Below, in pieces: positions 726 through 63,998 of a DNA stretch of 64,000 nt. Positions within the stretch are counted from its first letter, which is position 1. Each line of letters begins with the position of its first letter. Source of the stretch: Mytilus edulis (Eukaryota); NCBI RefSeq assembly GCF_963676685.1, contig NC_092355.1, positions 26,288,001 to 26,352,000 on the forward strand, written 5' to 3'. The translations under genes were made by a program, and so were the position numbers. Below the pieces are notes generated by a model, which did no database searches, had not been told where the DNA came from, and saw only the letters and a list, made by a program, of their open reading frames with translations.

Positions 726-3700
726 TCATATCTTTGTAACAAGTTTAGCATTCTTGAATATTTTGTCTTCCGCTTGAAAACTCCACAAATGGGTTTCCCA
801 GTCTTCATTCGTTTTTTTACTGGTAAAGTCATATAACTAAAACAAAAAGACAAACAAAAAAAGAGGTAAGTTTTTAAAGTAATGTATATGTCTATTATGC
901 CGTCTTCATGACCTTTTATAATTCGGTCTTTGTATATGATAAAAATACAATGACGTACAACATCGGTCAAATTTACATTCATTTGGCATATGATCAGATT
1001 CCAACACTATATATCTAATAGATACAATACTATGATCAAATTTGAGAATTTGCAATTAAATTATGCGATGTCTGAAGTACAATGTGTAACTCGCTTTTTT
1101 TGCATGTCAAATGCGCGATTACAAACGACACTAAGAGGCGCATGACTTGAAATTTCGGAAGACCAAAACAATTCCAAAGTTGTAGAGCTCTTGAAACCAA
1201 AATTGTGCAACATGTTACAAATGTTTGAAAAAACAAATCAATGAAAAAGTTTAATGCATGAAACATGTAAAATAAATGTTTGATGGCAATGTTTTTCGCA
1301 ATTGACATGTGTTCGCTGAAGGTAAGAACCTTTCAGCAATTCTTGTCAATTACGAGAATGTTTAAGACAGCTTGTCACAAGTCTTACATACAATATTTTT
1401 ATCAAGATTAACTGAATATATAACTCAGCGGTCGACACGTTATGGTAAGAGAATTAGTAGATATAGTGCTGCTGGTCGAAGTTGAGTGAGTGGTGGAGCT
1501 GAATGTATATGTCATAATAGAATAGGCTTTGTGTGAAGTTTTTGAAAAAATAAATATTAATAATAATAGAAAAAGAGTAGAGAAGAAAACGTATATATAA
1601 TAATCATAACCGTTTTTCTTCTAGTACTTTAAAAATCTCTATCCCAATCTGGCCTTGTTGACGTTGATGTATCATTGACTGAGTTCCTCAATACCATACC
1701 ATATCAAATTTATCATGCGGTATACCTGCAAATTTAAATCTTTCATGTTGTTTGTGTGGTATATATATTGCTAGACTAAACTGGTTTAGAAAGTTACATA
1801 GTATCATAACGTTTTAGAAGAAAATCAAAAGAAAAACAAACCCCGCAAAAACAGCATTGCAACGGCTACAAAACCAGGTTAAATTCACCATTTGCTTCAT
1901 AAAAAGTGCCTTTGCAAAGTAAAAAATAATACAGTTTCTATGTGTATGAATGATACTACAAAAACAGGATCTATACCAAAGTCTGGTGGCACCAATCTCA
2001 AGTCAGAAAATCATAAGTTAAGGCCACACCAATTTGATTCCTTGTTCCGTTAAATTAATTATAAAAGTAATCTGAGCCGGTTTTTTTGTAAACAAGTGAC
2101 CCGAGCATGTAAGCATTGTTTTCCTTTCCCCTTACTTGCATTCTTTTGCAAAATCATGCTAATTTTCGTTGTTAGAATAAAATACACAGAACTTCTTAGG
2201 ATTAATGTATTCTTCAACTGCAGATTTAGTTGCCGGCGGAAGAAAACTATCGAAACCCACTACATGCTTATGCACTTATCCCGAGTCAGGAGCCAGTAGT
2301 TGTCGTGAGTTGGTGTGGTTGATAGTTATTTCTCCGTTTGTATATAGATAAGTTCGTAGGTTTACCTGTTTGAATTGTTTTACACTAGTAAAGTTAGGGT
2401 CCTTTATAGCTTGCTGTTTGGTATGTGTTAAAGGCCGTCGTACAATTGCAATTGTATTAATTTTAAATACATGATCAGTTAGGGAACAACCCTTTTAATA
2501 AACATTTATTAGATAAATAATCCTTTATAAGAGGGACTGTCACTCAGATAAGGTGTCATTTTACTATTATAGAAAAGAAGAAAGGAAAACTTAGATTAAA
2601 AAAAAGAGGGTATTTATCATATTTGGAACAACTTTTCTAAAAGAGAGGTCAACTTATTTATAATAGTCAAGAAGATATATATATATATATTTGAGTTCAG
2701 GAATATTACATGTTTGAACCATATCATACCAGATACATGTATAGTTCTTTGTTTCCAACCTTATTATGAATTGGATTGAAAATTGTCTCCTTGGCGCTAA
2801 TACTACATCCTATTATACACAAAGTGCCCAAAAAGACAAACATCTAAAATGAGAACACCGAAACAACAGAGACACATACAACCATCACATAACTAAAAAA
2901 CTAAAATGTACACACATCGACGAACAGCTCGACCCCCCTCCTCCATAAAAAAGATAAATCTTGGTAAACAAGACAAAAACACTAGGTCTTCATAATTAAG
3001 TAAATGTCAACGTACAAGTGGTAAATCAATTTTTATACCCTCTTTGTTTATCAATATTGTCAAAATTTATTTTTCCTATGTTTACAAAAAAACGTAATAG
3101 TCGCTCACCTTTACTTTTGAAGCTTCGCCTAAAAAAGTTGAAACTGTTTTGTTTTAATAAAATTTTCAAATCGCTCGCTCCGCCTAATGTTTGGAGTCGA
3201 AAAATCCGTAGAACAAATAATTTAATTGGTGTGGCCTAAGGAACAAAACAAATCAAAACAAGTAAACATGTCAAGGAGTTCAATTCCAGAACAAAAATCA
3301 AGAAAAGTAAAGGAATTTGTAATAACTTATGCATGCATATGGTGCTACAAGATATCTAATTACGATATATCTATATATTTGTTTTCAAATGACGGGAAAA
3401 CTTTCTCTTTATAATGCATATGGCATTTCTTACGGTATTATTTGTGTCTCAAATCAAAAGATAAGTAATATAGAATCTGCTTAGATTTTGACCGTTTATG
3501 AGCTGCATAAGTCTAAACATGAGTAATGTGGGGCAAACTGTTTAACGCTGTGTCGCAGAAAAAAACTAAGGAGCCTGACAAACAATTATCATTAACTCAC
3601 CAATTTTCTACAAAATAATATAACAATTTCCCTCAATAAAATACTCAAAGTACCCGATGGCAAGTTCACAGACTTTATCCGCTGTTTACATACTACCATA

Positions 3701-4298
3701 TGCCATGGCTTTGAATTGACGTGGTTCAACACGTGAACGTTGTTGCAAATTAAGCACTTTGTAACATTTTATCACTCCAATAAACTAACATATACAAATA
3801 TCATTTTTCTTCCTAATCAAAAATCAACGAAGCTATAGTACTCATATTTTACTTTACCATGGTCATCAAATTTTTATCTTTAATTGTTATTAAATATAGT
3901 ATTGTCTTTGTTATATTTAACTCTTTAAATCATTCTGAATAATGTTATCTTGATCAATTGAATCACAGTTTAGTTTGTATTACCTTGCTTTAAGTCTAAG
4001 ATAAACTTTGTCAGCAATAGCATACGTTAAACTGAACATCGATGTCTTTAATTCCAGTTTGTTTTTACAAAAAAAAAAAACATATGCTTTGTGTCTTTCT
4101 AATTTTCAATATTGTTGATGTTTTAAATTGCGCAAAGTATAGTAGCATCATATCATGCATATTTTACCCTAAATTTATATTTAAATTTAAAGCTTTGTCC
4201 CCAATGGTATTGCTAGCATGTTGTATCCGGGTTTCCACATTCTGCTCTTGTTCCTCTTTTATTTCGAAAGATACGAAAAATTCCAAAAGTTCAGATAT
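726..4298 (-). pseudogene. Pseudogene of the tandem muconolactone-isomerase-like gene
   Basis: Exon 4298-4168 (ISELLEFFVSFEIKEEQEQNVETRIQHASNTIGDKAL...) has ATA instead of ATG and is 131 nt versus 123 nt in the paralog, a frameshift. There is a remnant of the exon-3 end near 3858 (GACCATG|gtaaagt). Exon 1725-1610 (GIPHDKFDMVWY*GTQSMIHQRQQGQIGIEIFKVLEEKR) is 116 nt like the paralog, with an in-frame TGA at 1690-1688 and donor GT>TT. Last exon 836-726 is LYDFTSKKTNEDWETHLWSFQAEDKIFKNAKLVTKI*. Exon order and phases match 52076-57995. Confidence 0.85.
2021..3237. mobile_element. Non-autonomous TIR DNA transposon (Kolobok-like ends) with nested fragments
   Basis: Terminal inverted repeats AGGCCACACCAATT (2021-2034) and AATTGGTGTGGCCT (3224-3237) in TTAA/TAA context. 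Confidence 0.5.
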
Positions 4299-10210: not shown

Positions 10211-11119
10211 ATCCCGTATAATTCTGTATATGTCCCAAGTCAGGAGTCATTGATTGCCATTGAATGGTGTCTGCCATATTTATTTTTCGTCTATTGTTTA
10301 TAGCCTCAATCAGCCGGTTGATGTTCTCTTTTGAAGTGTCTCACATTTGTCCTACCGGGGCCTTTCTAGTATACTCTATGGTACGGGTTTTGTTCATTGC
10401 TGAAAACCATACAATGACCTGTATTGGTCTAGTGTGCATAGTTTTTTTCATTGGAAATCACATCACTGTGTTTGCTTTAAATCCAATGGAAAATATTTCA
10501 TGATAGCTGCACGTCTGGTATCAAGATGTATCACATGTAGTCTCTATTTTATATGCAGCTCCAAGTTTGGTATCAAGATTAATAAAGGCAGACGTTTAAG
10601 CATCACTTCCGCAAAATAAATATTTATTACGACAGAGGTTTTTAGTATAGAAGCGATTCTAGCTACACGTTCGGGGATCGGTATCAAAATAATTTCAGAG
10701 GAGGTTCTAGCTGCATGTTTGATATCAAACTTATTACAGAAGATATTTTTAAGAACATGGTATATTTATACACGCACTGTGTACCAGATAAATTGATCCT
10801 TGAAATTGACAAAATTAAAATAAAGGTCAGTGATATTTATGCAATTTTACTTTACGATAACATCGGTGTGCAACGTGTGCATGATGTTACATATGATACG
10901 TAAATTACAATGTAACTGTAGCTTGGACAAGTTTATCTTTTTTAGATCTTTTGTATTATGTCGTACACATTCGTCATAAATCGGCCGATTCCGTACCTTC
11001 ATCGGGTAGAAGGAGTGTAGCGGAGTCTCCTTAGGATTGCCGATTGATCAGATAGAAAATGAGTTGTGGAGTCACCCGATAGTTGCCAATTGAACTCTGA
11101 CAATTTCTGATTGAAAAAC

Positions 11120-14100
11120 ATGGCTTACTTCAGAGAAAAAGTTGTCCTTGTAACAGGTAGGAATCATGTTCTGCTATCCGTCTGACTTTTCTAAAACATG
11201 TGAAGATTATTAAATTTGCTGTGTATTATATATTGCAAATGTATATATCTTTTTCCCCATAGTAATAGATTACTAACGGACTGTCCTTGGCGATAATGAT
11301 GATCTTGTCATAAAGAAATCAAAGAGAAATTACTTCAAAATCACGCGTGAAATTTAATTCTAGTTTGGTTACAAATGTTTCAAACATAATGATAATACCT
11401 CTTTTGAAAAAGCAGACCACTCGTTTTATATTAAAATTGAGGGTACGGAAGGGGATTTTTAGAATAGAGAATAATAGGGAGAAAATATATAATGAATAGA
11501 GAAGAATGGACAAAAAAAAAGAAATAAAGATAATAACCAGGTTTGGCAATATGAAGAATATTGCAAAATTGCTCAAGAATTAAAGAATACAAAAATGAAA
11601 GACTCCACCAAGGCACTCAAATATTGTACGACTTGAGATTCCTAAAAATGTTATATCTCACCCTGAATTAAAATAAATCGCTGATTTCCAATGTTATTGT
11701 TAGCCGCTGATATGGGTATGGTATTAGTGATTCAACGTATGCCCTAGTTTTATGTTTAATTTCAATAGATCTGTAAAAATCTGCATTAGTTCAGACTTGA
11801 CAACCTAAAACAATACATATTGAGAATACTTATTAATGTTGTTATTGTTTTTCTGTTATGAAACTCATTTTATAGCACATAAGACATAAGACATTTTATT
11901 TCACTAAAGACCCCAATGGGATATGAAGTACAATATTTTTCCTATTGTAGTAATTTAATCATCATGACTTTATCAGGTGACAATACCAACACTTAAAATC
12001 TAGGCTAAAATGAGGCTTATACATAATTAAAAATTTTAATTCAGTCGGGGACCCGCCGTTATCGCGGGTGTGTTCTAGTATAATATAATATATAATGAAT
12101 ACTGATATGTGACAGGAAGTACAAATTATAGTAACATGATTAAGCACATGTTTTAAAAGGTTTGAATAACACTTTTTCAAAATTTCAAAAGAATAAAAAG
12201 ACTGAGATATGGGGTACATGTCAATAAAACAGCAACAAAACAACACAAATAACCCAATGACAACTAATAAATCTAAAACGCCGAGTTGTATTCAAGTGCA
12301 TTTTTTGCGACAGACCTATACAAATGTCAATCTTATAAAGATCTCCAAGTTTTTCGAACGTAAATTTATCAATCTGATTTTGAGTGATGCCTTATCACTA
12401 GATATGATTACCAACGAATTTAACAGGAGCAACACGACGGGTGTTACTAGCAGAACAGGAAATGTTGACATTTTCTGAGAACCTGAGATGACCAGCGGAT
12501 TTTGTTGCTCAATATTTAGTTTCTGTGTAGAGTACTTTTTATTCGGTTGTTAGTCTATTTGTCGTTTTTTTGTTACCGTCTGTATGTCATCCGGTTAATG
12601 ATTTTGTTTAAACTGTCGATTAATTCGTTGTTGACTTTTTAACCTTGAATTGACACAAAAGTACTCCTTGAATTGTAACATCAGTGAAAATAACAGAGGT
12701 TGGGGGTAAACAAAGGTGCAATAATAGTATATAATGATGGTAGTATGTGGTACATGTAAATAAAACAGCAACCAATCAACACAAATAACCCAATGACAAC
12801 TAATAAATCTAAAACCACGAGCTGTATTCAAGTGCATGTTTAGCGACAGACCTACGCAAATGTCAATTTTACCATAACGATCTCCAATTTTTTCAAACGT
12901 TAATTTATCAATCTGATATTGAGTGATGCCTTATCACTAGAAATGACTTCATGTACCAACGAATTTAACAGGAGCAAAACGACGGATGTTACTAGTAGAA
13001 CAGGAACGATTGACATTTTCTGAGAACCTGAGATGACCCTCTGATTTTTTCTGTTCGCGATAATCAATATTTAGTTTCAATGTAGTGTACTTTTTAATCG
13101 GTTGTTTATCTATTTGTTTTTTTATGTTTACTATGCTACCGTCTGTATGTCTTCCGCTTAATGATTTTTTTAAAACTGTCAATTGATTTGTTGTAGACTT
13201 TTTAACTTTGAATTGACACTCCTTGAATTGTGACATCAGTAAAATTAAGAAAAAAAAACCGCCCTCTTCAATTTTTTGTTGTTTTGCAACATGCAGAGCT
13301 ACTTTGCGGATCCAGTGGTTGGGGTCCGGGGGTCGGAACCCACTCATTCTATTTATTTATTTCTATTTTTTTTTTAATTATGTGAACGTTTCATGGTGTT
13401 CCGGCAGTTGCAACCCTCAGTTTTCAAAATGGCTGGTTCCGCACCTGAAGATTGTGTTTATATTAATCTTTCAGGAGCAAGTTCTGGTATAGGAGAAGCC
13501 ACCGCTGTTAAGTTAGCAGAACATGGTGCCACCTTATTTTTAGTGGCTCTCGAAGAGGACAAATTACAAATTGTACAACAAAAGTGCAAGGAAAAGGGTT
13601 TAGTAGAAGAAAAAGTAAGTTATTTAAATTTTAATATAAATATAATTTTGTCGCTCAATTATCAAGATCATCATGATAATAATTTTATAAAATGTATACT
13701 CAATCTTGTTTTCTAGTGTCACATAGACTAACATTAAAATACCTGGATTGAAGGTTGAATGAATAACCGTTTGACGTCCTGTGGTAAATGTTACACGCAT
13801 ATTTGGACGATAAGATGTCAATGTGATACGAACATGAACAATACCATCTCTATAGGAAAACGGGGGTCTGAAGGAATTTTACAGAGTAGAGAGTAATGAA
13901 CCAAATCTACAGCAAAATGACGCTCAAGGTTGATTTTACAGAATAAGATATACACCAAAATGGGGGTCTGGGTGGATTTGGATTACTGAGCCAAATAAAC
14001 AACAAAATGGGTGACTGGATGGGTTTTACAGAGTAGAGAATAATGAGCTAAATCTACAGCTAAATGATGGTCTGGATAGGCTTTACAGAGTAGGGAATAC

Positions 14101-17100
14101 TGAGCCAAATCTGTAACAAAATGATGGTCTGGATGGGCTTTTCAGAGTAGGGAATAATGAGCCAAAATCTGTAACAAAATGATGGTCTGGATGGGCTTTT
14201 CAGAGAAGGGAATAATGAGCCAAATCTGTAACAAAATGATGGTCTGGATGGGCTTTTCAGAGAAGGGAATAATGAGCCAATTCTGTAACAAAATGGGGTT
14301 CTGGATGGAATTTACAGAGTAGAAAATAACGAGCCAAAATGGATATGCTGCATCACAAAGTGCAAGAATCAATCGTGTACAAAACTAACTTCATTTAAAG
14401 ATGAAACAAATATATTAATCATGGTTTTCACCTGTATAAGAAGGAGTTCTGTGAATCGAATTGCTAACCAAATGGTTTACCCTTGTTTCACTTTTAATGT
14501 TGACATTAATTTCCTTTTGTTAGCAGAACACGCTTAGTTCATGAGTTGCCCGTAATTAAATAAGGGGTTAAATAGAAGGTCACATGAATACGGTTTCAAT
14601 GAGGTCGAATTATTCACTTGCAAGTGAATAATTCATTAGCGATGTTTCTTAGCTCATTTTCACAAAATTTAAACAAACCGGCTGCTAAAAGGGAATTGTT
14701 GTTCTACTATTTCACTTGCATTTATGATATAACAAAAAAAATCATATTTATATTGTTTTCATTTCTAGTATATTATATCCCTTTAACCAATAACATGGTT
14801 GACGCCTTCTTGCTGCGCACATACACACAATAGAAGAGGGATTTCTAGCAGTAAACGCTCGTTTGTTCTGTTATTATCCAGTAAATCAAATTAATCACTA
14901 AAAACTCGATCGACATGCATGTTTTCCTGTATATTGGTAGCTATTAACTTTTAAAAAAATGACTTAGAACCCTTTGTCCATTCTTATATTCTTAGAATTG
15001 CATTATCAAGTACTCAATGGTCCATATGTGTTTTCATGTGATTTAATTCTGATAAACAAACCATTATGTCAATTTACTCAAAGTTGACTTCATATTTTCA
15101 TGGAAGCTTTATGTTCATTGTTGTTGTTTACTTCACTTGAAACATGAATGTGTGCAAATGTTATTAAGTCTTGTGCGCAAACGGAATGCGCCTGTGAAAT
15201 TGTGTGCATTTTATTTGTTTAGTATTTTTTAAAATAATTTTAATGGGTTAATTTTTTTTTCTCACTCTGGTAGTTTTAACAAATTTACCATGTAGATAAC
15301 ATTTTTTACTGTATAAAATCGCGTGTAATGTATACGCATAATTATATTTTCTTCTTAGATAGGGTATTGCAGTGGTGACTTATCTAATATGTAGATAACT
15401 TTTTCTTTTATAAGACTTTAATAAAGTACTGATTCATTATCCCATGTAATGCATACGGATGATTATATTTTCTTCATAGATAGGGTATTGCAGTGGTGAC
15501 TTATCTCAATCGGCCTTCAGGGAAGACATTGTAAGGAACCTGATACAGAAATTTGGAAGATTGGATATATTGGTTTGTTTTATATGACATAAATATACCT
15601 TTTTGTTCACCATTATAAAAGAAAATATGATGTAACCCCCCAATAAAGCAGCGACTCAGCAAAGCAAAGTCGACATCCAGTTAATATTCGGTCCACAGAT
15701 ACAGACATCCATCATTCCTATATGACATAGTACTAAAATTGGAAGTGATACCTTTTCAGATTAAAGTTTTTATATGCGGAACGTATTATTTATCGACAAA
15801 ACGTTCAGACTTTGGCAATAAAAAAACCAATACAGGATAGTACAGCGATTCATTTTGGCATACAAAAGCAGGGATAAGGTATTGATAAACTTTATGACAG
15901 AAAAAAAAGCAATTAGGGTTATTTCATTGCAAAACATAACGACAAAACATCTGCTGAAAGTGTAACTGTATCTCGTAAATTTGAGATAATGACACTAATC
16001 TTGTTTTACAATGGCCTAAAACAGATTGCTCTCATAGAATAAGAGAAAAATAAAATAATTATGTATTATTTCTGTGCAAGTACGATATAGGTGGTCCCAA
16101 ATATTCGTGGCTAACGACACTCAGATATCAGAAGACTATATCTCATATACTGTGGATTCATTTCTATTCGTAGGATATCAATGTTCGTGGATTTTGTGGG
16201 TATAAGCGAACCACGAATTCAAATATTCAACGAAATAAAAATGTTCTATAGCCTTGTGTGCAGACTTTGGCAAAACCACATCATTAGATATTCACAACAA
16301 TGCAATATTTACTGAATCCACGAAAATTGATAATCACGAAAATGAATGAATCCACAGAATGTATATACGTTTCAGGCTGATATTGCAGGCTATGCTATGT
16401 TTTCAAATGTAAATGAAACTAAGGAAGAGGATTACGACAGATTCGTCAATGTAAACCAGAAGGCGAAATTCTTCCTGGCACAACTTTGCTTGCCTTATAT
16501 CAAAGAAACAAAAGGTTTGTTATTATGAGGGAAAACTTAATTCTTTCTTTTACAACTATGCTTGCCTTATCTGAAAAAAACAAACGGTTTGTTAGTATGA
16601 GGGAAACTAAATTCTTTCTTTCAAAACTATGCTTGTCTTATCTGAAAAAAACAAAAGGTTTGTTAGTATGAGGGAAAACTAAATTCTTTCTGTCACAACT
16701 ATGCTTGCCTTATCTCAAAGAAACAAACGGTTTGTTAGTATGAGGGAAAACTTATATTCTTTCTTTCACAACTATGCTTATCATTTCTCAGAGAAACAAA
16801 AAGTGTGTTAGTGTGAGGAAACACTAAATTATTTGTCATAACTATGCTTGCCTTGTATCAAAGAAACAACAAGTTTGTTTGTATGAGGGAAAACTAAATT
16901 ATTTCTAGCACAACTATGCTTGCCTTATCTCAAACAAACAACAGGTTAGTTTGTATGAGGGAAAACCAGAATGCAATAAAAATGGGTAAGATACATTGTA
17001 GTTTTTTTACATTGCATCAAAAATCGAGATGCATACACATTTTTGTAATAACAAATATGGAATATATCACGAATATGTAAACTGTTCTGTAATCAAATTC

Positions 17101-21028: not shown

Positions 21029-21099
21029 ACAATATTGTCCCATCTCTCATATACTTCAGATTTCAGAATTTTAGTGTGAATAACAACCATTATATGTTT

Positions 21100-49369: not shown

Positions 49370-50260
49370 ATGTTTATCGGTTTACTGATAATACAGGTTT
49401 AAAATTCCGCATTTATTTTCGAGTCCCCCTTTTTTTCTTTGCATTCTGAACTTTGACCGTGTCTGTCACGTGACGTTACCGTATTGTGTCGTCACTTCTA
49501 AATTTTTTAACGTTTGAACGGGAAGCTTGTTCAAAACTGTTTTTGTAAAATCCAGTTCCATCCTCAACACAGATGAAACCTCAGAAAAGAAATAGGCAAC
49601 CGCATGTACAAGAATTAAATCATTGCCTTGTAATTTGCCATCCAAATATAAAAGCTCAAGATAGAGATTTATTCAGGCTTGACGGAGTGCACTTGTCAGA
49701 TGTGGGTAATGATGTTTTCTTAAATAATGTTCAGGGACCTTTAGAATTTTTTGCAAGTTCGGACCGTCGAGTATTTCCTAATTGATGAGTCTATAAATTA
49801 TATTTCAGTACGGTGTAGTAAACTCGTTTCGTTGGGGATGAGAGTGTATAGAATTCTCATTTGGCGGGATCTGGCAAGGGGGGTCATGACCCTGTAATTC
49901 TACGTTAGACCATATGTTAAAATATTCTACTGTGGTACCACAGGGAAGTTGTGTTTTTTTATAAACGGCTTTCTCTTGTTTACCAGAGCGGCCGGTTCAT
50001 CACTGTTACCCGTTTTGAATTTTATCCTCCGAGTACCGAGGAAGCGTTATTCAAGTTATGGCCTAGCGTCAGTGTGGGGTCGTGCTCCTCGTTCAATCTA
50101 ATTTTCCTTAGAGGAACTTTTGTTACTTCTGTTACCAGAAGAACACCTACTTGACAATATTAAAAATGCCGGCGGTTTGTATCGTCTTGCCAGACCTCGT
50201 TTACTGTTTTTTCCTCCTGCGGCCGATTTAATTCCACATAAGATTTCTTGAATTATTTAG
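49370..50260 (+). mobile_element. Ngaro/DIRS-like remnant with an SGNH-hydrolase fragment, inserted upstream of SDR2
   Basis: HPNIK...DLFRLDGVHLSDVGNDVFLNNVQ (DxxH block of SGNH hydrolases); it interrupts homology with the SDR1 upstream region. Confidence 0.55.
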
Positions 50261-52075
50261 TATTAAGGAGTTGCGGAATGATTGCCTATGAGACAACTCT
50301 TCTGTAAAAACAACGTTGGTATTAGCATCTAAAGGTACGCGTACAACCTTCAACAATGAGCAAAACCGTTACCATATGTTTTATTCCACACAATATTTCT
50401 TTAATTATTTTAATCTTTAATTGAATAAAACATGCATAAATGTCACTGACCTTTATTTTAGTTTTGTCAATATCAAGGAGCAACTTCGCTGGAACACAAT
50501 GCGTGTATAAATATACAAGGGCTCGTAAGTATATCTTATGTAATATGTTTAGCTACCAAATGTGCAGCTAGAACCTCTTCTGTAATTAATTTTGATACCG
50601 ATCCCCGAACGTGTAGCTAGAATCTCCTCTGTAGTAAATCTTTTTACCGGACATGGCACTAAAACATCTGTTGTAATACATATTGATATCGGGGAAGTGA
50701 TGCAAAATAAAGGCAACAGTAGTATACCGCTGTTAAAAACTCATAAATCGATAGAAAAAACCAAATCCGGGTTACAAACTAAAACTGAGGGAAACGCTTT
50801 AAATATATGAGGAGAACAACGACACAACATTAAAATGTAACACACACAGAAACGAACTAAGCATTAGACAAAATCCGATTAGGATAAAAAATATAGCCAA
50901 TGATACAATTATCCGCCAGAAACCGAAAGAATTATTTAATTTGAGCTTCTATAAACCCCTTCGATTAGGATATAACATATCAGTGAGAAATTACCCATTG
51001 GTCAGTGGTTTAGCTACACAACTTTAGAATATTTAGAGAAGCAGTTCCGTATAACATGTGTTACGAAGATTATTTTAGCATTGTCGAATGCTTTTGAATC
51101 AAATTGAAGTAAAATGCGGTTTCAAAATGTTGCTGTTATTCTAATATAACAGACTAATACCAATCAACTAAGCATTTGAATTACAAGCTCCTGTCTTGGT
51201 GACTTGTGGAGAAGTTAAACATGTTTGTGAGCTCTTGCGATCTTCTACATAGTACTTGTATTGCTTCTTTTTATCTATCAAATATCAGCGTGTAAATGTT
51301 TTTTATTTTGTTATAAACTATATTGCACTGTGACGTCATAAACGTATTTATAACATAGAAGCTTGCATCAAAACCATGAGACCTTTTATGCTCAAATATA
51401 CGGTATTGAGTGTTCTCGTTGTTGAAAGCCTAACTATTTCCTATAATTGCTTACATCCAATTTATTTGAACTTTGGCGGACAGTTGACTCGTTTGCATAA
51501 TATCACATCTACTAAGTTGTATATACTGTAATTTGTTTTAAATATATACGTAATAAAAGTAAATGATCAACAAACACTGTTTTAACAAGCAGCGTTTACA
51601 TGCTTCATACAATATATGAAAAGATAGAAGTTAATAAATATTGGTCACCGTACGGTCTACAACAATGAGCAAAACGCCTACTACATCAAAGGTAAACGAA
51701 ATGACCAATTTAGAACAATTCAGACAAGAAAACTAACAGCCTTGTTATTAGTTTAGACTTTTCTTTTATAATTATGAACATAAGTCAGTTCTCGTTTGAT
51801 TTTTTTAAATGTGTCGGTTCAGGGCCTTTTATATCTTACTACGCGGTAAAGTTTTTACTCATTTATGAAGACCGAAAGTTTTTTCTAGATTGGCTATTGT
51901 AGGGGCAATACCGCATTTTCTAGCGGGATTTAAAATCTTGACACGGAAGGTTGTATTTATTTATTATCAGTAACAAAAAAAGCATACACACAATGTAAAA
52001 CGTTTGAAAACAAATAAATTAGTATCATTCGCTTTTAAAATCAAGTAATTTTAGATGAGAACACTACAGTCTTTG

Positions 52076-55000
52076 TTATGACATTTTTGTGACGAGTTTC
52101 GTCTTCTTGTAAATCTGGTCTCCCATCTTGACCCACATCGGAAGTTTTAACATTAGGCCCTCCCAGTCTTCCGGATTATCTTTACATGAAAACGCATGCA
52201 GCTGAAATTAAAAAAATGATATATATAAGTATATCATGAAATTTGTTTTAAGGAAAAGTTAAAACGTCTTTGACGAAGTTAAATATTGGGGTAAAATATA
52301 CAAATAATACAATCGCTTACAATAAGAGGGCAGGTTTCAACTCCCTCAGGCAAAGTTGGCTTTATATGAATTTGGATATTTATTTTAGGTATATTTGACA
52401 TATAGCTCTTCAACGATTTTCGGTACTTATTCATCTTCGATTTCAAATGTTTGGCTTTGATCGTTCCTGATGAAGGTAAATCCAGAAAAGCGCTTCGGAC
52501 GCAAGAAATTATCAAACGTGTTGTTTTCAATATTGTACCTGGTGTTACAATGTCGATCAACATGTCAATTGTAAAATACAAACTTGTCAATGCTTGCGTA
52601 TACTAATTTTCGTAAACACCCTTTTCTCGGAAAGATTTGAGCCTACAAGAAAAGAAGTGATACGATACTAAACACAACAAATACTCTTAGACTAGTACTT
52701 TAACATCATGCAATTTTAAACATTTATTGCCCGTGCATGATGGAGATGTGAAGATTTGTTCAATGACATGTGGTATAGTCTGCACCAATCAAATATTGTT
52801 TAAACTATCAATATGTATAAACAGTGGAATAATATGCTTTAATTTGCTGAAGGTGTCTTAGAAATTTAAGGTTAAAACCCAGGTTGAGGTCTGTAAGAGT
52901 TATATGTACATACAGGACATAAAAGTTAGGTTTATGGTTTGATGTAGCATACATAGCTTTGAACCCCTTACGCAACAAAAGGTTATTATGAATGTTATAG
53001 AGCCCAAATTTACAAATTTTGTTTATTTGGTATCAAACCAAAAAATTTAAATAAGGACTCAGGTACTTCAAATTATGTGAATTTGAAAAACAGACTAAAT
53101 AATTGTCTAATGCTGAAATGTATTCAGCAGTGAAACTACTGAATCATTTTTTCTCAAATCATATAAACCAATCCACATGACACTGGTTTCTTATATAGTA
53201 TTCGTTTGGTATATTAAAGATTACAAGAGAGCCGTGGTGTAGTGGTTAGTGCATCGGACTACTATCACAAAGGTTCCTGGCTCGATTCCTGTTCCGGGAT
53301 GAAAATTTCAGGGACTGAATTTTCGGCTCTCCCTTGACACCATTTGCGAGTATGGTCTTGAGGCGACGATAGTGTTAAGAGAGCCATATCTCTTGTCCGT
53401 TAAAGACACCCTTGTAGATTTCGAAAAAAGAGAAGGCTAATGCCGCTACAAGGCAGCACTCGCACCCGCAAAGTGGAAAGGGATTAATATAAGTTGCAAA
53501 ACTTGTTTCCCAATCCACATACATATGTTTAAACTAAAGATTAAACGTTTTGGAGAGGGAAGTTATTAAGAAACATACCCGTCTTTCACCAAGTACTTTG
53601 AAAATTTCAATTTCGATCTGTCCGTTACTGCGTTGTTCTAGAATTGAAGCTGCCTCGTCTCGCCAATATTCCAAAAATTGTTCTAATGGTATACCTGTCA
53701 ATCATATACAAATGTATACGTGAAGCCGAAATGAACAAAGTACACAATGTATACCATTGTAACTTGCCTTTTTAATTCAGATTTATATCGCACATATTCT
53801 AATCTTGCATTTGTTTTTCCTGAATCGATTTATGAATTTCGAACAACGATATACTACAGTAACTGTTACCTTAATTTACTCATATACATTTGATAAAATT
53901 TGAGTATTACTAATTGTGTTTGTTTCTACACTAAGAAGATGTCTCTAAGAGGAAAATTCCACCCATCAGTTCTAAAAAGGAAAAAAAAAAGCTGAAACGA
54001 ATGATACGGTGATGTATGATGTATAATGTTTACTCTGACACAAACTTTGTGTTATTAAAAATAGTATGAGTTTTTTACTTGAAAGTAAGACTAAGTGTTT
54101 TACTTTAATTTGCTTTTTTAAACTTTTTCTGCCGAAAATAGCAAAATCCTTTAACTAACACGCGTGTTGTGTCATGTTTTTTTTTTTAATATGATATATG
54201 ATCTGTGTTTAAGGGGCACCAGCTACGAGATATATAAAAAATATAATTTCGTATACGTTATGTGTACGTAAGAGGAACTCTATTCAATCGAAAGACGTGC
54301 GTTGCAAGATTTTAATGCAAAGGTATACGCTTGGTGAACGCTTTTACTCCAGAAATTTTTCATGCAGTATAGAAATGTTCAAGCAGCTCTAGCGTTTTGA
54401 AAGTGAATACCTGTTCGCCACAAGCACTTAATACATTCATTACACGGGCGTTGGAAAACGCTACAGATAACTTTGAGACACGTTTAGGGCACGTTGTATA
54501 CGCCCCAAGATCGTTCGACTTTTATTTGGACTTTTACTTGGACGTACGCGGGGCGTGTTTGTACCATACGCCTGGCGTTGTTTAAGCGCGTGGCGTATCA
54601 AAAACGTACTACTGTGGATTCATTATAATTTGTTGGATACCAATTTCGTGGGTATCGTGGGTACAGGTGAACCACGAATTCAAATGTTCAACGAATATCA
54701 TATTTCCTTAGGCTTTGTATACAGAGATCGGCAAAACCAAGAAATCAAATATTTACGAATATGCAAGTTTTTAACAATCCACGAAAATTGATACCAACGA
54801 AAAAAAAAATGAATCCACAGTATTCTGACATTCCAAGACACTTGCCCTGACATTTATATATGACATATGTTCGAATAATTACAAGACCATGTGATATACG
54901 CTGATGTGTGACGCCGGTATTAAGAGGGTAAAACAGAGGGCCTAGACAATACGCTATGGGTAGATACTATAGTTTTACTTTACCATGATGTTCTATTGTA

Positions 55001-57995
55001 ACTTCAAACCAAGTGACATATTTTCCTGTCAATTTCCTTGGAGCTGGTCCTGTTAACTTTACATCAACGCCTAAAAGCTTAGCCCACCTTTCATAACTGG
55101 TAAGAGGTGTGCATGTTACTTTAAAGGGCCCGCGATACATCAATTCTGAAGTAACCGTATCCAAAACTGTAGCATCTTCTACTTCAAGAACTATAAATAA
55201 ACAAAAATAATTTGTGTAAATTCCTCACATATATAAGATGGTGCACACACACAAATACGATATAGCTATCACGTAATGAATTCGTCATTGTTGGTATGTT
55301 GAATAAAACAATTGAATAAGGAATAGAAAGTTACAGTAGTATCCTAAATATTTTATCATGTTTATTAGTGGTTACTATAATAAAGTGCAATAATGCGGAG
55401 GAGCTGCATACTAAAAAAAAGCACACATTCACCGCTTCCAAAAAGATGCATTTAAATCTTAAAACTTCATTATCGGCCTCAACCATACAATTGCGAGCTA
55501 AATTAAGGTTTTTGGTTTATTAGGTCTTCCCACTATTCTGTTGAAAGACTTATTGTATTTGTTCTGGTTATTCTCTTTTTTCTTCTTCCACCAAATTTGT
55601 TTCGTGCCCTGTTTTGTGGTTTCGCGAGATGTTGCTTAGATTTTTTTTTGCATATGATATCCAACAGGTATTGCGATTTTGAGACTATCCCTGTTTAGTT
55701 GAAGACTTGTTATTGTTAGAGTTTTCTCCCAAAAAAGAATAGAACACTAAATCAAGGTCAAAGTCAAAGGTCGAGGTCAAATTCTAATTATTTACTTTTT
55801 CTAGTTCATTGATCTCCTCTGTCACTTATAAAGATATATATAAAAGTACTAGTGCAATATGTTTGCTTTATCGTGATTGAGATATGATACGTTTGATCTG
55901 AAACAAGCCAATGACATCAAGAGTTATTGGACCTGAAATTATTCAATAAAAGGTGAATTGATAATAACTCCAACTTGTTACATGATAAAGCCGTAGAACC
56001 GTTAACAAACTGTTGCTTGACATGTGACCTTGAAAAATATCACCCGGAAATGACCTGGAGTAAAACGGAAGTAGCTTTTTGAACTTATTTCATGGAAAAA
56101 TTCTTAGAACCTATATTTTTTTAAATATGCATACATTTGTCTTTATATTCTTTATAAGATATCGAGCGGAACACGTGCAGTTCTACCTGTTACATATTTT
56201 ACGGAAATTGAATTAACTTTAAAAGCGGTCATTCAAACATACAGAATAGTTTGACATAAGAAGGGTAAAACTAAAACGTTTTTAAACTTACTTGCAACAA
56301 TTTTGGCTTCCCCAATAACCTGAAATTAATTCGTAATTTTTTTCATATTTGTAAGTTGATCGATATAGATCATAAGGGTTTGTTTTGACTTGTTGTCCTT
56401 AATTTCAATGTTCTTTAATTTATGAGCCATTTTGTCTGTATCAGGTCTTTCCACAATCACCTGGAAAGACCTATTATTTTTGTTCTGATTTTTTTTTTCT
56501 TCTTCAGCCAAATTTTTTTCTGGCCCTGTTTTGTGGTTTTGCAAAATGTCGCTTATATTATTTTTTTTTTTGGCATATGATATCTTACAGTTATAGCGCT
56601 TTTGATACTGACCCTTTTAAGTCGAAGACCTTTTGATGTAAGAGTTACATCCCCACACTGTTTTCTTTGTGTCAGATCTCCTCCAGAACCGCAAAGCGAC
56701 AATTTTTTTGTTGTTTTTTTTTTAGGGCGAGGGGGTCATTGGGTTAATATTTTTTTTGTTGTCTCCGTTGTATCCTGTTTTATTTTTATTAATGTTGCAT
56801 AGTTATACTAACCGTTATACGTGTTTTACTGATCCACCGACCTTTGCGATCTCACTACGATCTTAGTGCGCTATCACTACGCTTTTACTACGACCTGATG
56901 TCGCCACGACCGCACTACGATTGTTTTAAACATGTTCAATGTTGGCCACGCTCATCACGATCTTGGAGACCTCACCACGACCGTGATACGACCTTACTGC
57001 GATCTACACGATCGTACTTTCGTACGATCATCAAAATTTTCATTTTTTTCACAGTTCGTAGTGCGATCGTGGCCTAGTGGGACTGCGGTATTAGGTAAAC
57101 AATAACTTTGTCGTTTGTCTTACTGACATTTATCAAACACCTGCTTTAAATGATGAAAAAGTAATTTATCTGAATATCATTTCGCTCTTTACTATTTTTT
57201 TGCTATAGATAATTCAATAACTCTGTTCTCGATTTCGTTGTACTAAAATTATAATGATCGATACCTCTTTTGAAAAAACGCACGTGGTTACGGTGCCAGA
57301 ATTCGGCCAAGAAAGTAGCAAAAGATATGTTGTTACCTCAAGATGCTATGTCGTTTCTTCAAGATAATATGTCGTTTTTCAAGATATTATGTCGTTTCCG
57401 CAAGATAGCCGGTATGTCGTTTCTTCAAGATATTGTCACGGTCGTTTCTTCAAGATATTATGTCGTTTCCTCAAGATAGTATGTCGTTTCTTCACGATAT
57501 TATGTCGCTCACTCACGATAATATGTCGTTTCCTCAAAATATAATGTCGTTCACTCACGATAAGATGTCGTTTCCTCAAGATGCTATTTCGTTTCCACAA
57601 GATAGTTATTTCAGTATTTCTATGTTGTGGGAAGCATATTTTATCTTGAGGGGACGATATAATTATCCTGTGGGAACGATATAATATCTTGAGGAAACGA
57701 CATAGCATATTGGAGGAACGAGATAACTTTCTTGTGGGAACAACATAGCATCTTGAGGGAACAAAAAAGTCACATACATGTAGTATCTTATAGGAACAAC
57801 ATTTTTGTTGCTTTCATACGTTTTATATTAACAATTGTATAACTGTATTTTCCATTCAATGTTACGTCTTACCCTGAATCTAAATATTGCGTGGTCTTTG
57901 ATGTAGACGTTAGCCTGTGTTATGAGTGACTCAACAGCTGTTCCGGTTTTATGTTTTATTTCAATTGACATGAAAAACTGCATTAGTCTAGACAT
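52076..57995 (-). CDS. 199-aa protein with two tandem muconolactone delta-isomerase (CatC/MIase)-like dimeric alpha+beta barrel domains
   Basis: Exons 57995-57873, 56319-56292, 55190-54984, 53694-53579, 52201-52076; GT-AG, intron phases 0,1,1,0; 600 nt open. Protein MSRLMQFFMSIEIKHKTGTAVESLITQANVYIKDHAIFRFRVIGEAKIVAILEVEDATVLDTVTSELMYRGPFKVTCTPLTSYERWAKLLGVDVKLTGPAPRKLTGKYVTWFEVTIEHHGIPLEQFLEYWRDEAASILEQRSNGQIEIEIFKVLGERRLHAFSCKDNPEDWEGLMLKLPMWVKMGDQIYKKTKLVTKMS. Internal repeat FRVIGE/FKVLGE. Family call is from a by-eye match to CatC motifs as I recall them. Confidence 0.8.
52462..52501 (+). ncRNA. Hammerhead-like motif with variant stem II, inside a dispersed repeat (about 52320-52535)
   Basis: cgttc-CTGATGA-aggtaaatcca-GAAA-AGCGCT-TC-ggacg; more decayed copies at 19842-19883, 26663-26703 and 34258-34300 (-). 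Confidence 0.55.
53229..53520 (+). mobile_element. tRNA-derived SINE
   Basis: gagccgtggtgtagtggttag (A box) and GGCTCGATTCC (B-box-like), followed by a non-tRNA body of about 220 bp. Confidence 0.8.
54610..54822. mobile_element. MITE, same family as 16148-16359
   Basis: tactgtggattcatt...aatgaatccacagta TIRs. Confidence 0.8.
57320..57800. repeat. 21-bp tandem repeats in inverted arrangement (MITE or foldback)
   Basis: (gatattatgtcgtttcctcaa)n at about 57325-57605, then reverse-complement units at about 57640-57800. Confidence 0.8.
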
Positions 57996-58979
57996 GACTA
58001 CCTAGAAACAGTCAGAACATTTATATCTAGATATAAAAATAATTGTTACCTTATCTGTTATGATCCACGGTGGGTATATTAGTCAACAATATCAATAAAA
58101 GGGTGAACATATTCACATTAGAACTTCATTGTAAACAAAGATGCAATACTAGTATATACATGTATAATGAATACTGATTCGTGACAGCAAGTACAAATTA
58201 TAGTAACACGATTAAGCACACTTATTAAAAGCTTTTAATGACACTTTTGCAAAATTTCAAATCGGTAAAAAGACTGAATGGTTTTACATTACTAATTTTT
58301 GGGGCCCTTTATAGCTTGCTGTTCGGTGTGAGTCAATGCTCCGTGTTGAAGGCCGTACCTTGACATATAATGGTTTACTTTTATAAATTGTTATTTGGAT
58401 GGAGAGTTGTCTCATTGGCACTCATACCACATCTTCCTATATCTATCTATGAGATAGGTTAATGAAACTGCAACCAAACAGCACAAACAAATAACCCAAA
58501 GACAACCGTTTCTGATAAATCTAAAAAGTTTAGCTATATTCAATGTTCTTATTTTTCGGAGGCCCTTCACATGCACATGTAATTTGGCTGTCAATATTTT
58601 AGTTTTGATTCAAGCTACAAAATGTATCAAACAAGGAAGTGAAATGGCTTGTTGTCATGTTTACTTTCTTGTCAAATGGAAGATGTTGTTATTTTACAGG
58701 CAAATGAACTATTTTTGTTTTGTAATTTTCATTTCCTTAAACCTCGTTTCAGTTTCATTTGATATCTGTCCTTGTTCATACTAACTAATGACGGTTCGAC
58801 ACTACACAACAATATTTAATGGAGCATAGCGATAATAAACGTCTGCAATGAAGATTGCAACCCCAACATGAATCCTCCTAATTGCTCATTACCATGCAAA
58901 TTTGTTTATTCAAATTTTAGACTGAAAACGCTTTCTAATAGAAAAATAGATATCTTGTTACGGTTTCTTCAATGTTATT

Positions 58980-59072
58980 AAAATAAGTTCTCATCACTTG
59001 CTCCTTGACTTTTTATATGTCGCCGTGTCACGTGACACATAAAAAAAGGAGCAAGTGATGAGAACTTATTTT
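58980..59072. repeat. Perfect 27-bp inverted repeat enclosing GTGTCACGTGACAC
   Basis: aaaataagttctcatcacttgctcctt (58980-59006) and aaggagcaagtgatgagaacttatttt (59046-59072). Confidence 0.85.
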
Positions 59073-59824
59073 TATAATATTGCGGTTTTTGTTGGTCGTT
59101 AGTGTGGATGAAATATTTGCCACTGGAGGTTACCAAAACAACGACTTATCAATTATAAGGGTTTCTCAGTTCAATGATGAAACTATATATGTTCGAGTAC
59201 CACGTTTAGAATCAACATCAATTACAGAAGAGGTTCCAGGTCCACGTATGGAAGCATCACTTATAACAGAGGACATCCTTACGATCAAGAGTCTCAATAT
59301 TTATACACGCACTGTGTTCGAATTAAATCATTGCTTGATATTGACATAATAAAACAAAGGGTCAGCGTTTTCTCTGTGTTTAGTAACGTGTGCAATGAGT
59401 ACAGTACATAATCTCTTATATGATATGCTATCAAAATGTTAGGCCATGGCAATCATTTTACATCGTTTATCTCGTACAGTTTTGTACCGACATTTTTAAG
59501 ATGAAAATAGAATGATGTTAATACTATATGTTTTGTTTTATTATCTTTTATCCGAGGAAAATAGTGGAAAATTAGTTTTGTGCTATCAAGGAGTAGCCAG
59601 TTTAAACTTATTTAAGATTGAAGAGACAAAATTTTAATGGTGTACAGTATTTTTCAATCGTTTATTAGATCATACTTTAATTCCACTCTGTTGAGAAAAA
59701 TAAATTAAAGTTTTGGTGTAATTAAAAAAATGGTTGACCAAGTTTGTGGGCTTTTTTTAACAAGAAAACACTCAATCATAAACAACAATAGTCTTGGCCT
59801 TATAAATTTGTTTACATGTAAAAC

Positions 59825-62800
59825 ATGGCTAACTTCAGAGACAAAGTTGTCCTAGTAACAGGTAGGGATATATATTATGTACTATAAGTTTTACTTATAT
59901 TGAGAACCCGGGATTGAGACACTCGTTTGCTTTAGTTTTTGTATAACCCGTGATAACAATATTAATTTGTTGTATAATTTATAATGCATATATGTGTGTA
60001 TTATTTACATTTCAATAGACTACTACATTTTGTACTTACGGACTGATCGAAAGACGTCCTTGACGATAATGATTACCTTGTTATAAAAATTCAAGGACAC
60101 ACAAATTCAACATCACGCGGGAAATTTAATTCTAATGTTATTAGTAACAAAATGTTCTTATATATCTTTATATTGAAAACAGAAATACAATGAACTATTA
60201 ATTGATTTCGTTTTTTTTTAGTCATTTGTTTATTAATCTGATATTGTGTAATGCCTGATTGCTAGTATATACATGTAGGTATGATCACTAACAAATTTAA
60301 CAGGAGCAACACTACGGGTGTTACTAGCAGAACAGGAAATGTTGACATGTTCTGAGGACCTTAAATGACCCTCTGACTTTGCAGTTCGCGTTGCTAAATA
60401 ATTAGTTAATGTGTAGAGTATATTTTGATATGTAGTTTGTCTTTTTTTACATCTTCTTTTGACTATGTTACTGTCTGTCTATCTTCGTTTAAACTGTCAT
60501 GTAACTTTTGTAGAACCCCCCCCTTTTTGGCATAAAAGTATTCCGCGAGAATTTTGACACCATTGATGATTTTTAAAACAAAAATGCCCTTCTGAAATTA
60601 TTGTTGTTTTGTAACATGCGTCCAAGGGAAAGAGTGGTGGGGGTCAGAACCTCCTTTTATTCGATATTTTTTTCTTACTATTTTGTAAACATTTCATGGT
60701 GTTCCCATATTTGGAACACTCATTTTTCAAACGTTGAGATTATTTTTATGTTGATCTTTCAGGAGCAAGTTCTGGCATAGGAGAGGCCACCGCTATTAAG
60801 TTAGCAGAACATGGTGCAACATTATTTTTAGTGGCTCTTGAAGAGGACAAATTACAAAATGTACAGCAAAAATGTATGGAAAAGGGTTTAGTGAAAGAAA
60901 AAGTAAGCTCTTTGGATTTTGATAGATAAAAGAAGAATGATGTGATATGAGTGCCAATTAAACAACTCTCATTGAAAGTCATAATTTGTACAAGTAAACC
61001 ATTAGGGAACAACAATTTAAATCCAAAGAGGGTGCGGGTGTACTTTTTTGTTCTGATTCCCAATTTGATGAAAAGTAAATATTCTGGTCAAGCAGATTAC
61101 AAAATAAAATATTCTGAATCTGTATTTTTCCTATACGTTATAGTGTAAGATATTGAAAAAAAAAAAATGATTTGTTTGATTGCATTGAGAACCCCCCTCC
61201 CCCAATTGAAATTAAATGGTTGTCCTTTATGTGTAAAAGTGCGGCCTTCAACATGGATGTCTTGGTGATTATAATTTTGCGCTTATTTATCAAGATCATC
61301 ATTACAATTTTATGCTCAATCTGGTTTTATAGTGTTTCATACACTTATTTCACTGTCCACTGCTGTCTTTGCAGGATGCTTTAATGATGCGTGTGTTGTT
61401 GTTTTTTTTGTATGATACGGCCGGTGATCGAGCCTTCTTTAACCCCCGCATTCGAGGCCAGCACGCTTCGACAAGGTTAAATTTTCTGTAATTGATTAAT
61501 TTTATAAATAATCGACTAACCTTGTTAAACTGTGTACTAGTATTTTAGAAGCTGCGAATAAAACAATTTCGTAGGACCATTTAATAATCTGAGGTGTTGG
61601 GTGTGCAGGAAGGTTTTAAAAATGAATAAGATGTGATGAATGGGTTTTCTTTTACAAATCGTGTCTTGCATGGAGAGTTGTCTTATAGGCACTCATACCA
61701 AATCTTCTTAATATATCTATTTCCTTACACTCGAAATCGGATTTCTCAAATATCCCGTATTTCAGTTGAAACCATTTTCAATATATTTTTCTGTTAATAT
61801 AATATGAAAACATTTCGATTGACAGGTAATGTTAATCTCTTATGAGATTTGCATAAGTACAATGTACATGTATCTCTGTATAACATAAACAATTGGACAC
61901 AATCTTCGATGCCCCTCTCATTATTTGGTTCTTTTGGGCCCCAAAAACTGTAGTTGAGGGACACTTGATCTGACTCCCACTTCCAAGATCCATTTTTCTG
62001 AATGTCGTTTGCACCTATCCATGGATAATACAACTTCAGTTCTAAAACATAACGTTACAACTATATAATTTTCATTCCGCCATTATGATAACAAAAATAC
62101 TGCTGAACATCACAAAAGTATTGTGGCCAGATGCGGCCATTTCGCCTTTTTGCGTTTTCGTGTTTTCTTCCTTCACTTTGCAAACGCGAAATCGGAAAAT
62201 CAGGACATCGAGAAATCGAGAAAGCGAAATCGAGAAATCAAGAAATCGGGAAATCGGGAAATCGAAAAATAGAGAAATCGAGAAATAGGGAAATCGGGAA
62301 ATCGAGAAATCGAGAAAGCAAAAACGCGAAAACACGAAAGCGAAACGTGAAAACGCGAAATGAATTTCTCTTTTTCGCGTTTTTGCTTTCTCGATTTCCC
62401 GATTTCCCAATTTCTCGATTTCTTGATTTCTCGATTTCCCGATTTCCCGATTTCTCGATTCTGTATCTCTTGATTTCGCTTTCTCGATTTCTCGATTTTC
62501 CGATTTCCCGATTTCTCGATTTCTCGATATCGCGTGAAAGTGAAAGGAGAAAACGCGAAAACGCGAAAAGGCGAAATGGCCGCATCCGGCCGCCATGCAA
62601 AAGAGGTATTTGATAAATAATGTCAATGATCTGTAAATAGAGATCATCTCTTGATTTGCGTTACAGCAAAATGACTTGAGTGTGTACGTACATACGTAGG
62701 TAATAAAAGATAAAATTTGTGTAAAACTTTCCTGAACCATGCATGCGTTCATTATAAGGTTTGATAAACTTCCCTCCTTTCAGAGTAATAAATAGTCCTA

Positions 62801-63998
62801 TAGGTAGATATATTGGTTATCTATCGGATTAGTCTACAGTAATTCTTAATCTTAAAGAATGGTATTATACATGTACCTATTACAATGTATTAGTAACCTG
62901 ATAATGATTGCATGGCTCCACCAGAAAAAAAACTTTACCAAAGATATAACTTTTGCCTACATTTTCACACACTAAAGTAATTTTGGAATAATAACATTAC
63001 GTGTATGTTTCATTATAAACAAATATGTTTTTCTGATTGACTAGCAGAAATCTCGCGTTAATCTGAAACCAACATTCATTTCCAAATGAAATGTACCATT
63101 TAGATTGACACGAGCTTCCACAATAAAATGTACACTAGGTAAATAAAAAAATCTTAACGGAAATCATTTTCAAAAAAGCAATTAAAAGTATTGAATACTT
63201 CTTTGAGTAATTATATAGGGTTGTTAGAAGCATTGAACGTGGGTACATTTTCAGAATGAAACGCTTCCGCAGTGCATACACAATGTACTTCGGTCAACGC
63301 TTTTACACCACAATAAATTTACAAAAAGAAACATTCAATTATTAAATAAATTGGAAATTGAAACGCATCAAATACATTGTATTAGTGAAATGAAATGATA
63401 TTTACTGCAAATGCAAAATCCTGGAATTTTTATAACATAAAACAAAGAACCTTTTTTCTTGTCAAGGAGCCAAGGGGCCAAAAAGCCAACAAGCCAGTTG
63501 TTTGGTGGTTGTCGTTTGTATGTGCAGTTCATAAATGTTTCTCTCATCTTATACATATATCTTTGGTTTTCCTGTTAAGTCAAATGTTTTCTTTTTTCTT
63601 TTTTTTATTGTTTTCTTTTCTTTTTGTATCTTCAGCCATCGTGGATTGTAAAATGTATTAAAAATCTGTCTCGATCTGTATTGACATATGTTAATTTTGA
63701 GATCGGAACGCAACTTATTTGTCATTTCATATATTTTTTTTCATATCTGACTATGAACTATGGGCTATGTTCATTTTTGAAGGCCATACAGCGACATATA
63801 ACGGGTACTTTCTGTGTCATATATTCTCTTGTGGAGAGTTGCCTAATTTGCAATTAGACAACATCTTCTTGTTTTAGTATATTATGTTTACTTTTATCTT
63901 CTTAGGTAGCATATTGCAGTGGTGACTTATCTCAATCTGCCTTCAGGGAAGAAATTGTAAAGAACCTGATACAGAAATTCGGAAGATTGGATATACTG
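59825..63998 (+). CDS. SDR3: third SDR paralog, exons 1-3; the gene continues beyond the window
   Basis: Exons 59825-59861 (MANFRDKVVLVTG), 60763-60902 (ASSGIGEATAIKLAEHG...KGLVKEK) and 63906-63998 (VAYCSGDLSQ...GRLDIL), with donor GT at 63999-64000. Confidence 0.9.
61794..62041 (-). pseudogene. C-type lectin domain exon (WIG, EPN), antisense in SDR3 intron 2, probably decayed
   Basis: ttttag| LKLYYPWIGANDIQKNGSWKWESDQVSLNYSFWGPKEPNNERGIEDCVQL; the expected WND..C ending is not recognisable. Confidence 0.7.
62119..62596. mobile_element. Palindromic foldback element of about 480 bp with 8-bp GAAATCG(A/G) internal repeats
   Basis: Ends tggccagatgcggccatttcgcctttt and aaaaggcgaaatggccgcatccggcc; the two halves are near reverse complements. 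Confidence 0.85.

Follow-up and report, generated by a model that had tools for sequence, protein, structure and literature searches.

Segmental duplication and an ovorubin-like two-domain protein family at a MIase-fold/SDR locus of the mussel Mytilus edulis

The window analysed here is a stretch of 64,000 nucleotides of AT-rich animal DNA (32% GC; C12:26,288,001-26,352,000 in the 1.37-Gb Mytilus edulis genome) in which MIase-like sequences are interleaved with genes for short-chain dehydrogenases/reductases (SDRs). The arrangement originated by ordinary segmental duplication and includes one working divergent gene pair, and the unexpected part of the locus is the ovorubin-like architecture of the MIase-like family. 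Taken as a single account, it appears likely that the window is the right-hand end of a minus-strand tandem array of genes for mollusc cytosolic proteins of ~195 aa with two MIase-fold domains of the ferredoxin-like alpha+beta barrel kind, that all pairings with SDRs go back to a single ancestral head-to-head pair which was multiplied by old segmental duplications, and that the SDR subfamily is Mytilus-specific. The original prediction had read the locus as a two-enzyme cluster, in which one small molecule (catechol-derived, algal or halogenated) is converted by both a MIase-like isomerase, cyclase or dehalogenase and an SDR ketoreductase, with a bidirectional promoter serving the two genes. 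Metabolic gene clusters are rare in animals, and one would matter if true; the evidence points to one ancestral pair that was multiplied, not to repeated selection for linkage.

Duplication history of the locus

The MIase-fold family array spans C12:26.2126-26.346 Mb, with every copy on the minus strand. It holds at least four apparently intact family genes and several fragments, and a tandem pair lies on C3. Within the window, the family is present as one intact gene, one pseudogene and two exon-1 relics, and every intact SDR gene lies opposite such sequence, as the original prediction had observed; the SDR 3′ fragment has no partner (Table 1). The head-to-head distances it gave, ~1.8 kb for SDR3 and ~6.8 kb for SDR1, were confirmed, with 1,830 bp between the ATG of the intact MIase-like gene and that of SDR3, and 6.8 kb between the pseudogene and the ATG of SDR1. 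The pseudo-exons that it placed in intron 1 of SDR1 and SDR2 were likewise recovered by tblastn. Pieces of the pseudogene matched P0015 of M. galloprovincialis in tblastn at E 4e-9, 3e-13 and 4e-19, and its exon 3 was not found within the window. The matches of the pseudogene and the relics are far beyond chance. The pseudogene is an older paralogue, and P0015 is the closest intact relative that was found for it.

The product of the intact gene stands in RefSeq as 'uncharacterized protein [Mytilus edulis]', and the gene was thus already annotated, though nameless. Its exon 1 as transcribed starts at 58001. A four-exon model with an alternative GTAACA donor at 57866 was ruled out by the 28-nt exon 2 (56319-56292), which is contained in P0021 and in the RNA joints.

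Self-blastn of the window revealed an inverted duplication (10.6-21.1 kb against 50.6-31.9 kb) with 73-89% identity including the introns, and the SDR 3′ block has a third, direct copy at 25827-28369. Non-coding blocks of the SDR3 unit were 71-77% identical to those of the SDR1 unit. The order of the blocks differs between these two units, and therefore local rearrangement occurred as well. A comparison of an exon-1 relic with the intact exon 1 (47405-47559 against 58029-57881) showed 75% DNA identity, and the block 11677-11939, at the relic in SDR1 intron 1, matched 47554-47312. In divergence the relics equal the non-coding DNA around them, which fits copying together with the SDRs followed by decay. 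The original prediction had cautioned that the MIase-like paralogues were far more diverged than the SDRs, too much so for one simple block duplication; since the 75% identity of the relics matches the 71-77% of the duplicated non-coding DNA, this caveat is resolved. If a single juxtaposition was copied, the presence of a partner for every SDR copy therefore counts as one event and not as three.

The proposed history would begin with an ancestral head-to-head pair of a MIase-fold gene and an SDR gene within the end of the array. A duplication would then have split the SDR3 unit from the SDR1/2 unit, followed by the inverted duplication that gave SDR1 and SDR2 and by the partial 3′ copy. The SDR copies would have remained intact, whereas of the MIase-fold copies in the SDR1 and SDR2 units decay would have left no more than exon-1 relics, and the SDR3 unit alone would have retained a working divergent pair.

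Table 1. Features of the locus, in window coordinates
Feature	Position	Strand	Remarks
Inverted segmental duplication, left arm	10641..21090		Partner 50638-31885; self-blastn
Inverted segmental duplication, right arm	31885..50638		Self-blastn
Intact two-domain MIase-fold, ovorubin-like gene	52076..60069	-	Product XP_071142570.1, 199 aa (database protein P0021)
Coding exons of the intact gene	57995-57873, 56319-56292, 55190-54984, 53694-53579, 52201-52076	-	Translations are exact substrings of P0021
Non-coding leader exon of the intact gene	~60069-60040	-	RNA contig, run X1
MIase-fold pseudogene	729..4298	-	4298-4191 exon 1-like without ATG; 1726-1607 exon 4-like with in-frame stop; 836-729 exon 5-like
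MIase-fold exon-1 relic, with stop	11656-11778	-	In SDR1 intron 1; tblastn within window, E 9e-6
MIase-fold exon-1 relic, with stop	47446-47547	+	In SDR2 intron 1; tblastn within window, E 1e-8; 62% amino-acid identity to exon 1
SDR1	11120..21028	+	ATG 11120, stop 21028; tblastn, splice-site reading, exon-level Pfam adh_short and adh_short_C2
SDR1 exons	11120-11156, 13475-13614, 15480-15572, 16376-16514, 17182-17222, 17836-17905, 18367-18403, 20186-20258, 20883-21028	+	
SDR2 (inverted duplicate of SDR1)	31947..49205	-	ATG 49205, stop ~31947
SDR2 in-frame cores as matched	49202-49170, 46168-46031, 41375-41283, 39342-39202, 36007-35987, 35417-35349, 34940-34905, 33993-33919, 32087-31950	-	
SDR3 (classical, FabG-like)	59825..63998	+	Exons 59825-59861, 60763-60902, 63906-63998; ATG 59825
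SDR 3′ fragment, promoter-less (exons 8-9-like)	26968..27793	+	Third copy of the 3′ block; no MIase-like partner

Predicted fold and likeness to ovorubin

Searches for relatives of the MIase-like protein were seeded with single exons or with P0021; a protein search by exon 3 over 1.84 billion representatives returned full-length relatives. By a further profile search, the family is found in Mytilus species, four scallop genera and Haliotis, and all members are named 'uncharacterized'. Of the alignment columns of the family only 8 are invariant, and its members begin M-S-x-x and enter strand 1 by residue 3-5, with no signal peptide. The best Pfam family was MIase (PF02426), at a borderline 22-27 bits. 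P0021 scored 22.2 bits (E 1.6e-4), under the gathering cut-off of 26.7 bits, as did the scallop protein P0039 with 24.9 bits, whereas the abalone protein P0042 scored over it with 27.2 bits. A six-frame search of the whole genome with Pfam MIase gave no match because the exons are too short, and single exons gave no match. No paper on MIase in molluscs was found in the literature searched, and none on the 9UAJ structure described below.

The AlphaFold (AF2) models of the mussel and abalone proteins, with predicted local distance difference test (pLDDT) scores of 86.7 and 85.8, both contained two beta-alpha-beta-beta-alpha-beta domains. Each domain has the MIase-family fold (CatC, ClcF), shared with a solved member, and ClcF (3ZO7) superposed on domain 2; the motifs R-V-x-G-E and V-T-C-T-P-L are a further likeness to this family of muconolactone isomerases and chloromuconolactone dehalogenases. 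Bacterial enzymes of the family consist of a single ~95-aa domain per chain and assemble into decamers. In contrast, the 199-aa mussel chain was found to comprise two fused domains, and in an animal there is no beta-ketoadipate pathway context.

The top structure match in the PDB was ovorubin of Pomacea canaliculata (9UAJ), with a Foldseek E of 1.5e-9. The model superposed on the 9UAJ subunits over the whole chain, with both tandem domains, and well above other folds. The next matches, namely tandem ABM proteins, HemQ/chlorite dismutase and a SecDF domain, reached only 10.5-11.7, leaving ovorubin ahead by 7 Z units; the tandem ABM proteins and the chlorite dismutase/HemQ/DyP group also carry two ferredoxin-like domains per chain and align structurally over the full length. 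An unrelated role, in which the two-domain protein is a stress-response or regulatory alpha+beta barrel like those of the Dabb, GYD or ACT/RAM type and the SDR is a mere neighbour, is decidedly improbable, as matches of these types spanned one domain and scored far below ovorubin.

Ovorubin, also called perivitellin-1 (PcOvo, PV1), is like the mussel protein a mollusc protein of ~180-200 residues with tandemly duplicated paralogues. The two differ in sequence, with 14-16% identity and a sequence match that is not significant: the family profile aligned weakly (E 0.72) with 9uaj_C, 'Perivitellin ovorubin-1', positions 35-70 of the profile against 45-79 of the chain, which is the structurally equivalent place. 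Apart from this, the family profiles gave only RAD4 noise among PDB sequences, and the abalone protein alone had no match there. In eggs, ovorubin is a secreted, glycosylated hetero-oligomer that binds carotenoid, whereas the mussel proteins open directly with strand 1; without a signal peptide, they are therefore not egg perivitellins.

In the literature, PV1 counts as an orphan family whose relatives are confined to the ampullariids (PMC10168382). Judged by the predicted models, the mussel, scallop and abalone proteins are probably cytosolic relatives of the ovorubin/PV1 subunits, in which case PV1 would not be an orphan and would come from a fused pair of MIase-fold domains. PV1 is the hyperstable carotenoprotein behind the colour and defence of apple-snail eggs, and the family offers an origin hypothesis for it as well as candidate small-ligand-binding proteins in commercially important bivalves. 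By analogy with ovorubin, which holds astaxanthin, we lean slightly towards a mussel two-domain protein that would hold a small hydrophobic ligand in its modelled pseudo-dimeric barrel. An MIase-type isomerisation by the same protein ranks below ligand holding and, from the models, would be unlikely.

Transcription and linkage of the divergent pair

RNA contigs of four runs, which were chosen for containing this DNA, were aligned over 54950-60949; these are assembled contigs whose levels are not comparable. The minus-strand introns 55190|56292 and 56319|57873 were spliced out in contigs of all four runs, and therefore the contigs are RNA and the exon model is confirmed. A joint 58001|60040 in run X1 connected exon 1 to a leader exon within intron 1 of SDR3, with the consensus donor GTAAGT, and older gene models had another MIase-fold leader near 59220-59276. 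Two runs in which the MIase-fold gene was spliced, X2 and X7, also contained the joint of SDR3 exons 1 and 2 (59861|60763). SDR3 exon 2 was covered in all four runs, the X1 contig carrying 12 mismatches and possibly coming from a paralogue. The MIase-fold gene and SDR3 are thus transcribed divergently, and their 5′ ends overlap or lie directly against each other. This is compatible with shared regulation, and some co-regulation is likely. Of the predicted bidirectional promoter at 58000-59825, the divergent arrangement and the expression of both genes stood, but the interval is incomplete, as one MIase-like transcript starts at 60040 or beyond, in SDR3 intron 1.

A repeated block was noted upstream of each SDR first exon (10641-10843, 50433-50638 and 59211-59365). 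It contains an alternative leader, 'MSSVISDA...TSSV', which in older models (P0043, P0044) is fused to the MIase-fold protein. Separately, a short interspersed repeat at 58275-58450, with many loose ends, was very deep in the four RNA runs (mean up to ~160,000 per bin). It represents a repeat family that is highly transcribed, and related copies lie near 12084-12290 and 46700-46870.

Linkage in other Mytilus species was read by proxy, from accession order and a shared scaffold or contig, and partial SDR models in these species were found by protein search with the exon-2 reading frame. In M. coruscus, the MIase-fold protein CAC5371218 and the SDRs CAC5371220 and CAC5371221 are encoded on one 2.68-Mb scaffold; a single 360-kb contig of M. 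galloprovincialis encodes both the MIase-fold protein VDH95243 and the SDR VDH95238. The linkage is probably at least genus-old. In the genome exon search, neither the ~20 kb around the C3 copies nor the neighbourhood of the upstream C12 copies contained an exon of this SDR subfamily. The linkage described by the original prediction appears to extend to two further Mytilus species but not to these paralogues.

Several points weigh against the account given here. It is structure that speaks for homology to ovorubin, as the profile-to-sequence match has an E of only 0.72. Ovorubin is secreted and its chains align from residue 21, whereas the mussel proteins have no signal peptide, and there is no ligand evidence for any family member outside Pomacea. 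In contig depth the two genes vary in parallel, although across four runs and by a measure that cannot rank genes. The MIase-fold/SDR linkage is found in three Mytilus species, two of them by accession order, and together with the overlapping divergent transcription this conserved linkage would also fit selection for co-regulation.

The two-enzyme cluster draws on the same observations. The best family in Pfam is MIase, domain 2 can be superposed with ClcF, and a protein-language-model search returned ~200-aa bacterial MIase-family proteins at a score of 0.84, as a lead only. The genes are head-to-head, both are expressed, and by accession order they are also linked in M. coruscus and M. galloprovincialis; this much of the predicted isomerase/cyclase and ketoreductase pair was upheld. 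The enzymatic part was not, as the closest structure, ahead by 7 Z units, is a non-enzymatic carotenoid binder with a storage and defence role, and the position after the invariant Trp130, where the catalytic Glu would be expected, varies among the Mytilus paralogues of a family with 8 invariant columns (for ClcF, Glu27 as the catalytic acid/base is implied by the title of the 3ZO7 entry). Furthermore, the linkage appears to be of single origin, no SDR of this subfamily adjoins either the upstream C12 copies or the conserved paralogues on C3, and the SDR is generic, its top PDB matches being unrelated oxidoreductases. Nothing in the analysis points to catechol, lactone or halogenated substrates, and we consider the cluster highly unlikely.

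It is possible that the MIase-fold protein works together with the SDR. In one such pairing, the ovorubin-like protein would bind a hydrophobic ligand of the cytosol, a xanthophyll or other molecule, and the SDR would oxidise or reduce a hydroxyl or keto group on this ligand. The structure match to ovorubin and the divergent overlapping transcription speak for such a pair. Mussels, scallops and abalone, in which the family occurs, are also known for their carotenoid-coloured tissues. Scallop ovary carotenoids have been studied, but the carotenoprotein purified from that tissue is vitellogenin-derived (PMC7411991), and the association with carotenoids is seemingly exclusive to the PV1s of Pomacea (PMC10168382). 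In addition, the SDR subfamily is Mytilus-specific and the binder family is much older. We regard this pair as quite unlikely. The combined proposal, that mussels possess PV1 relatives and that in Mytilus the binder and the divergent SDR form a two-gene module in which a xanthophyll or another lipophilic ligand is both held and oxidised or reduced, is very improbable. The segmental duplication of one ancestral pair, with an ovorubin-like member, remains our preferred account.

The SDR genes

The three SDR genes are intact classical SDRs of nine exons each in which all junctions are AG/GT; exons 4-9 of SDR3 lie beyond the window, with the stop at about window+70432. All three retain TGASSGIG (as VTGASSGIG), the catalytic Ser (YLSS or YMSS) and Y-C-M-x-K (YCMVK or YCMAK), and exon-level searches with Pfam matched the adh_short profile at E 4.6e-6 and 8.9e-11. 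The true first exon encodes M-A-x-F-R-x-K-V-V-L-V-T-G. Another candidate for the SDR start upstream of exon 2, 'MAGS...CVYINLS', was rejected as the polypyrimidine tract of intron 1.

These proteins resemble the classical SDRs of the FabG, tropinone reductase or glucose 1-dehydrogenase type in having TGxxxGxG, the catalytic Ser, YxxxK, a length of ~260 aa and the Pfam domains adh_short and adh_short_C2, and a M. trossulus relative is named 'glucose 1-dehydrogenase-like' by NCBI. They differ in that the usual NNAG motif is (L)ADIAG and in that the subfamily is restricted to one locus of the genome, which holds the three genes, the 3′ fragment and an exon-4 fragment. The next best SDR in the genome was 56% identical and lies on C2; the genome-wide Pfam adh_short_C2 scan scored too few candidates for mapping every SDR. 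The nearest PDB relatives were assorted oxidoreductases, tropinone reductases, DHRS6 and FabG. The SDR is generic and its structural relatives are mixed, and they therefore do not indicate a substrate.

The M. coruscus relative P0054 (CAC5371220) matched adh_short_C2 at E 6.7e-42. Between P0053 (CAC5371221) and P0054, an SDR copy reads HCMAK at the catalytic Tyr of YxxxK, which may reflect an inactive copy, or an annotation or assembly issue.

The exon-4-like fragment (L008) is 78% identical and lies at C12:26277828-26277965 (+), ~10 kb left of the window. It is 2.3 kb from the start codon of the MIase-fold gene P0004 and on the opposite strand, and it looks like what is left of an additional copy of the pair. 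The 72-bp minisatellites at 16466-16966 and 37979-39252, which follow closely on SDR exon 4, repeat the 3′ end of this exon in tandem and encode a repeated '...KTKFFLSQLCLPYLKETKG' in frame-like units. The copy number is ~7 in SDR1 and ~17 in SDR2.

Other elements in the window

Reverse-transcriptase-like open reading frames were seen by eye at 21800-22300 and 28434-29036 (+), between the duplication arms and next to the partial SDR 3′ copy; neither had a Pfam match at E 0.01. Rfam gave no match in the whole window at the gathering score, and none in 45150-45500, which contains a hammerhead ribozyme candidate (45297-45340), at E up to 1. Two overlapping open reading frames at 36362-37173 (+) lie in an SDR2 intron and are locally GC-richer; the second carries a QRICH1 domain (E 4e-11) and, from its sequence, is taken as a putative domesticated or transposon-derived gene fragment. 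Finally, intron 2 of SDR3 contains an open frame with a match to the C-type lectin domain (Pfam Lectin_C, E 1.8e-7) at 61797-62033 (-), and a block of palindromic 8-bp microsatellite flanks it at 62125-62591.

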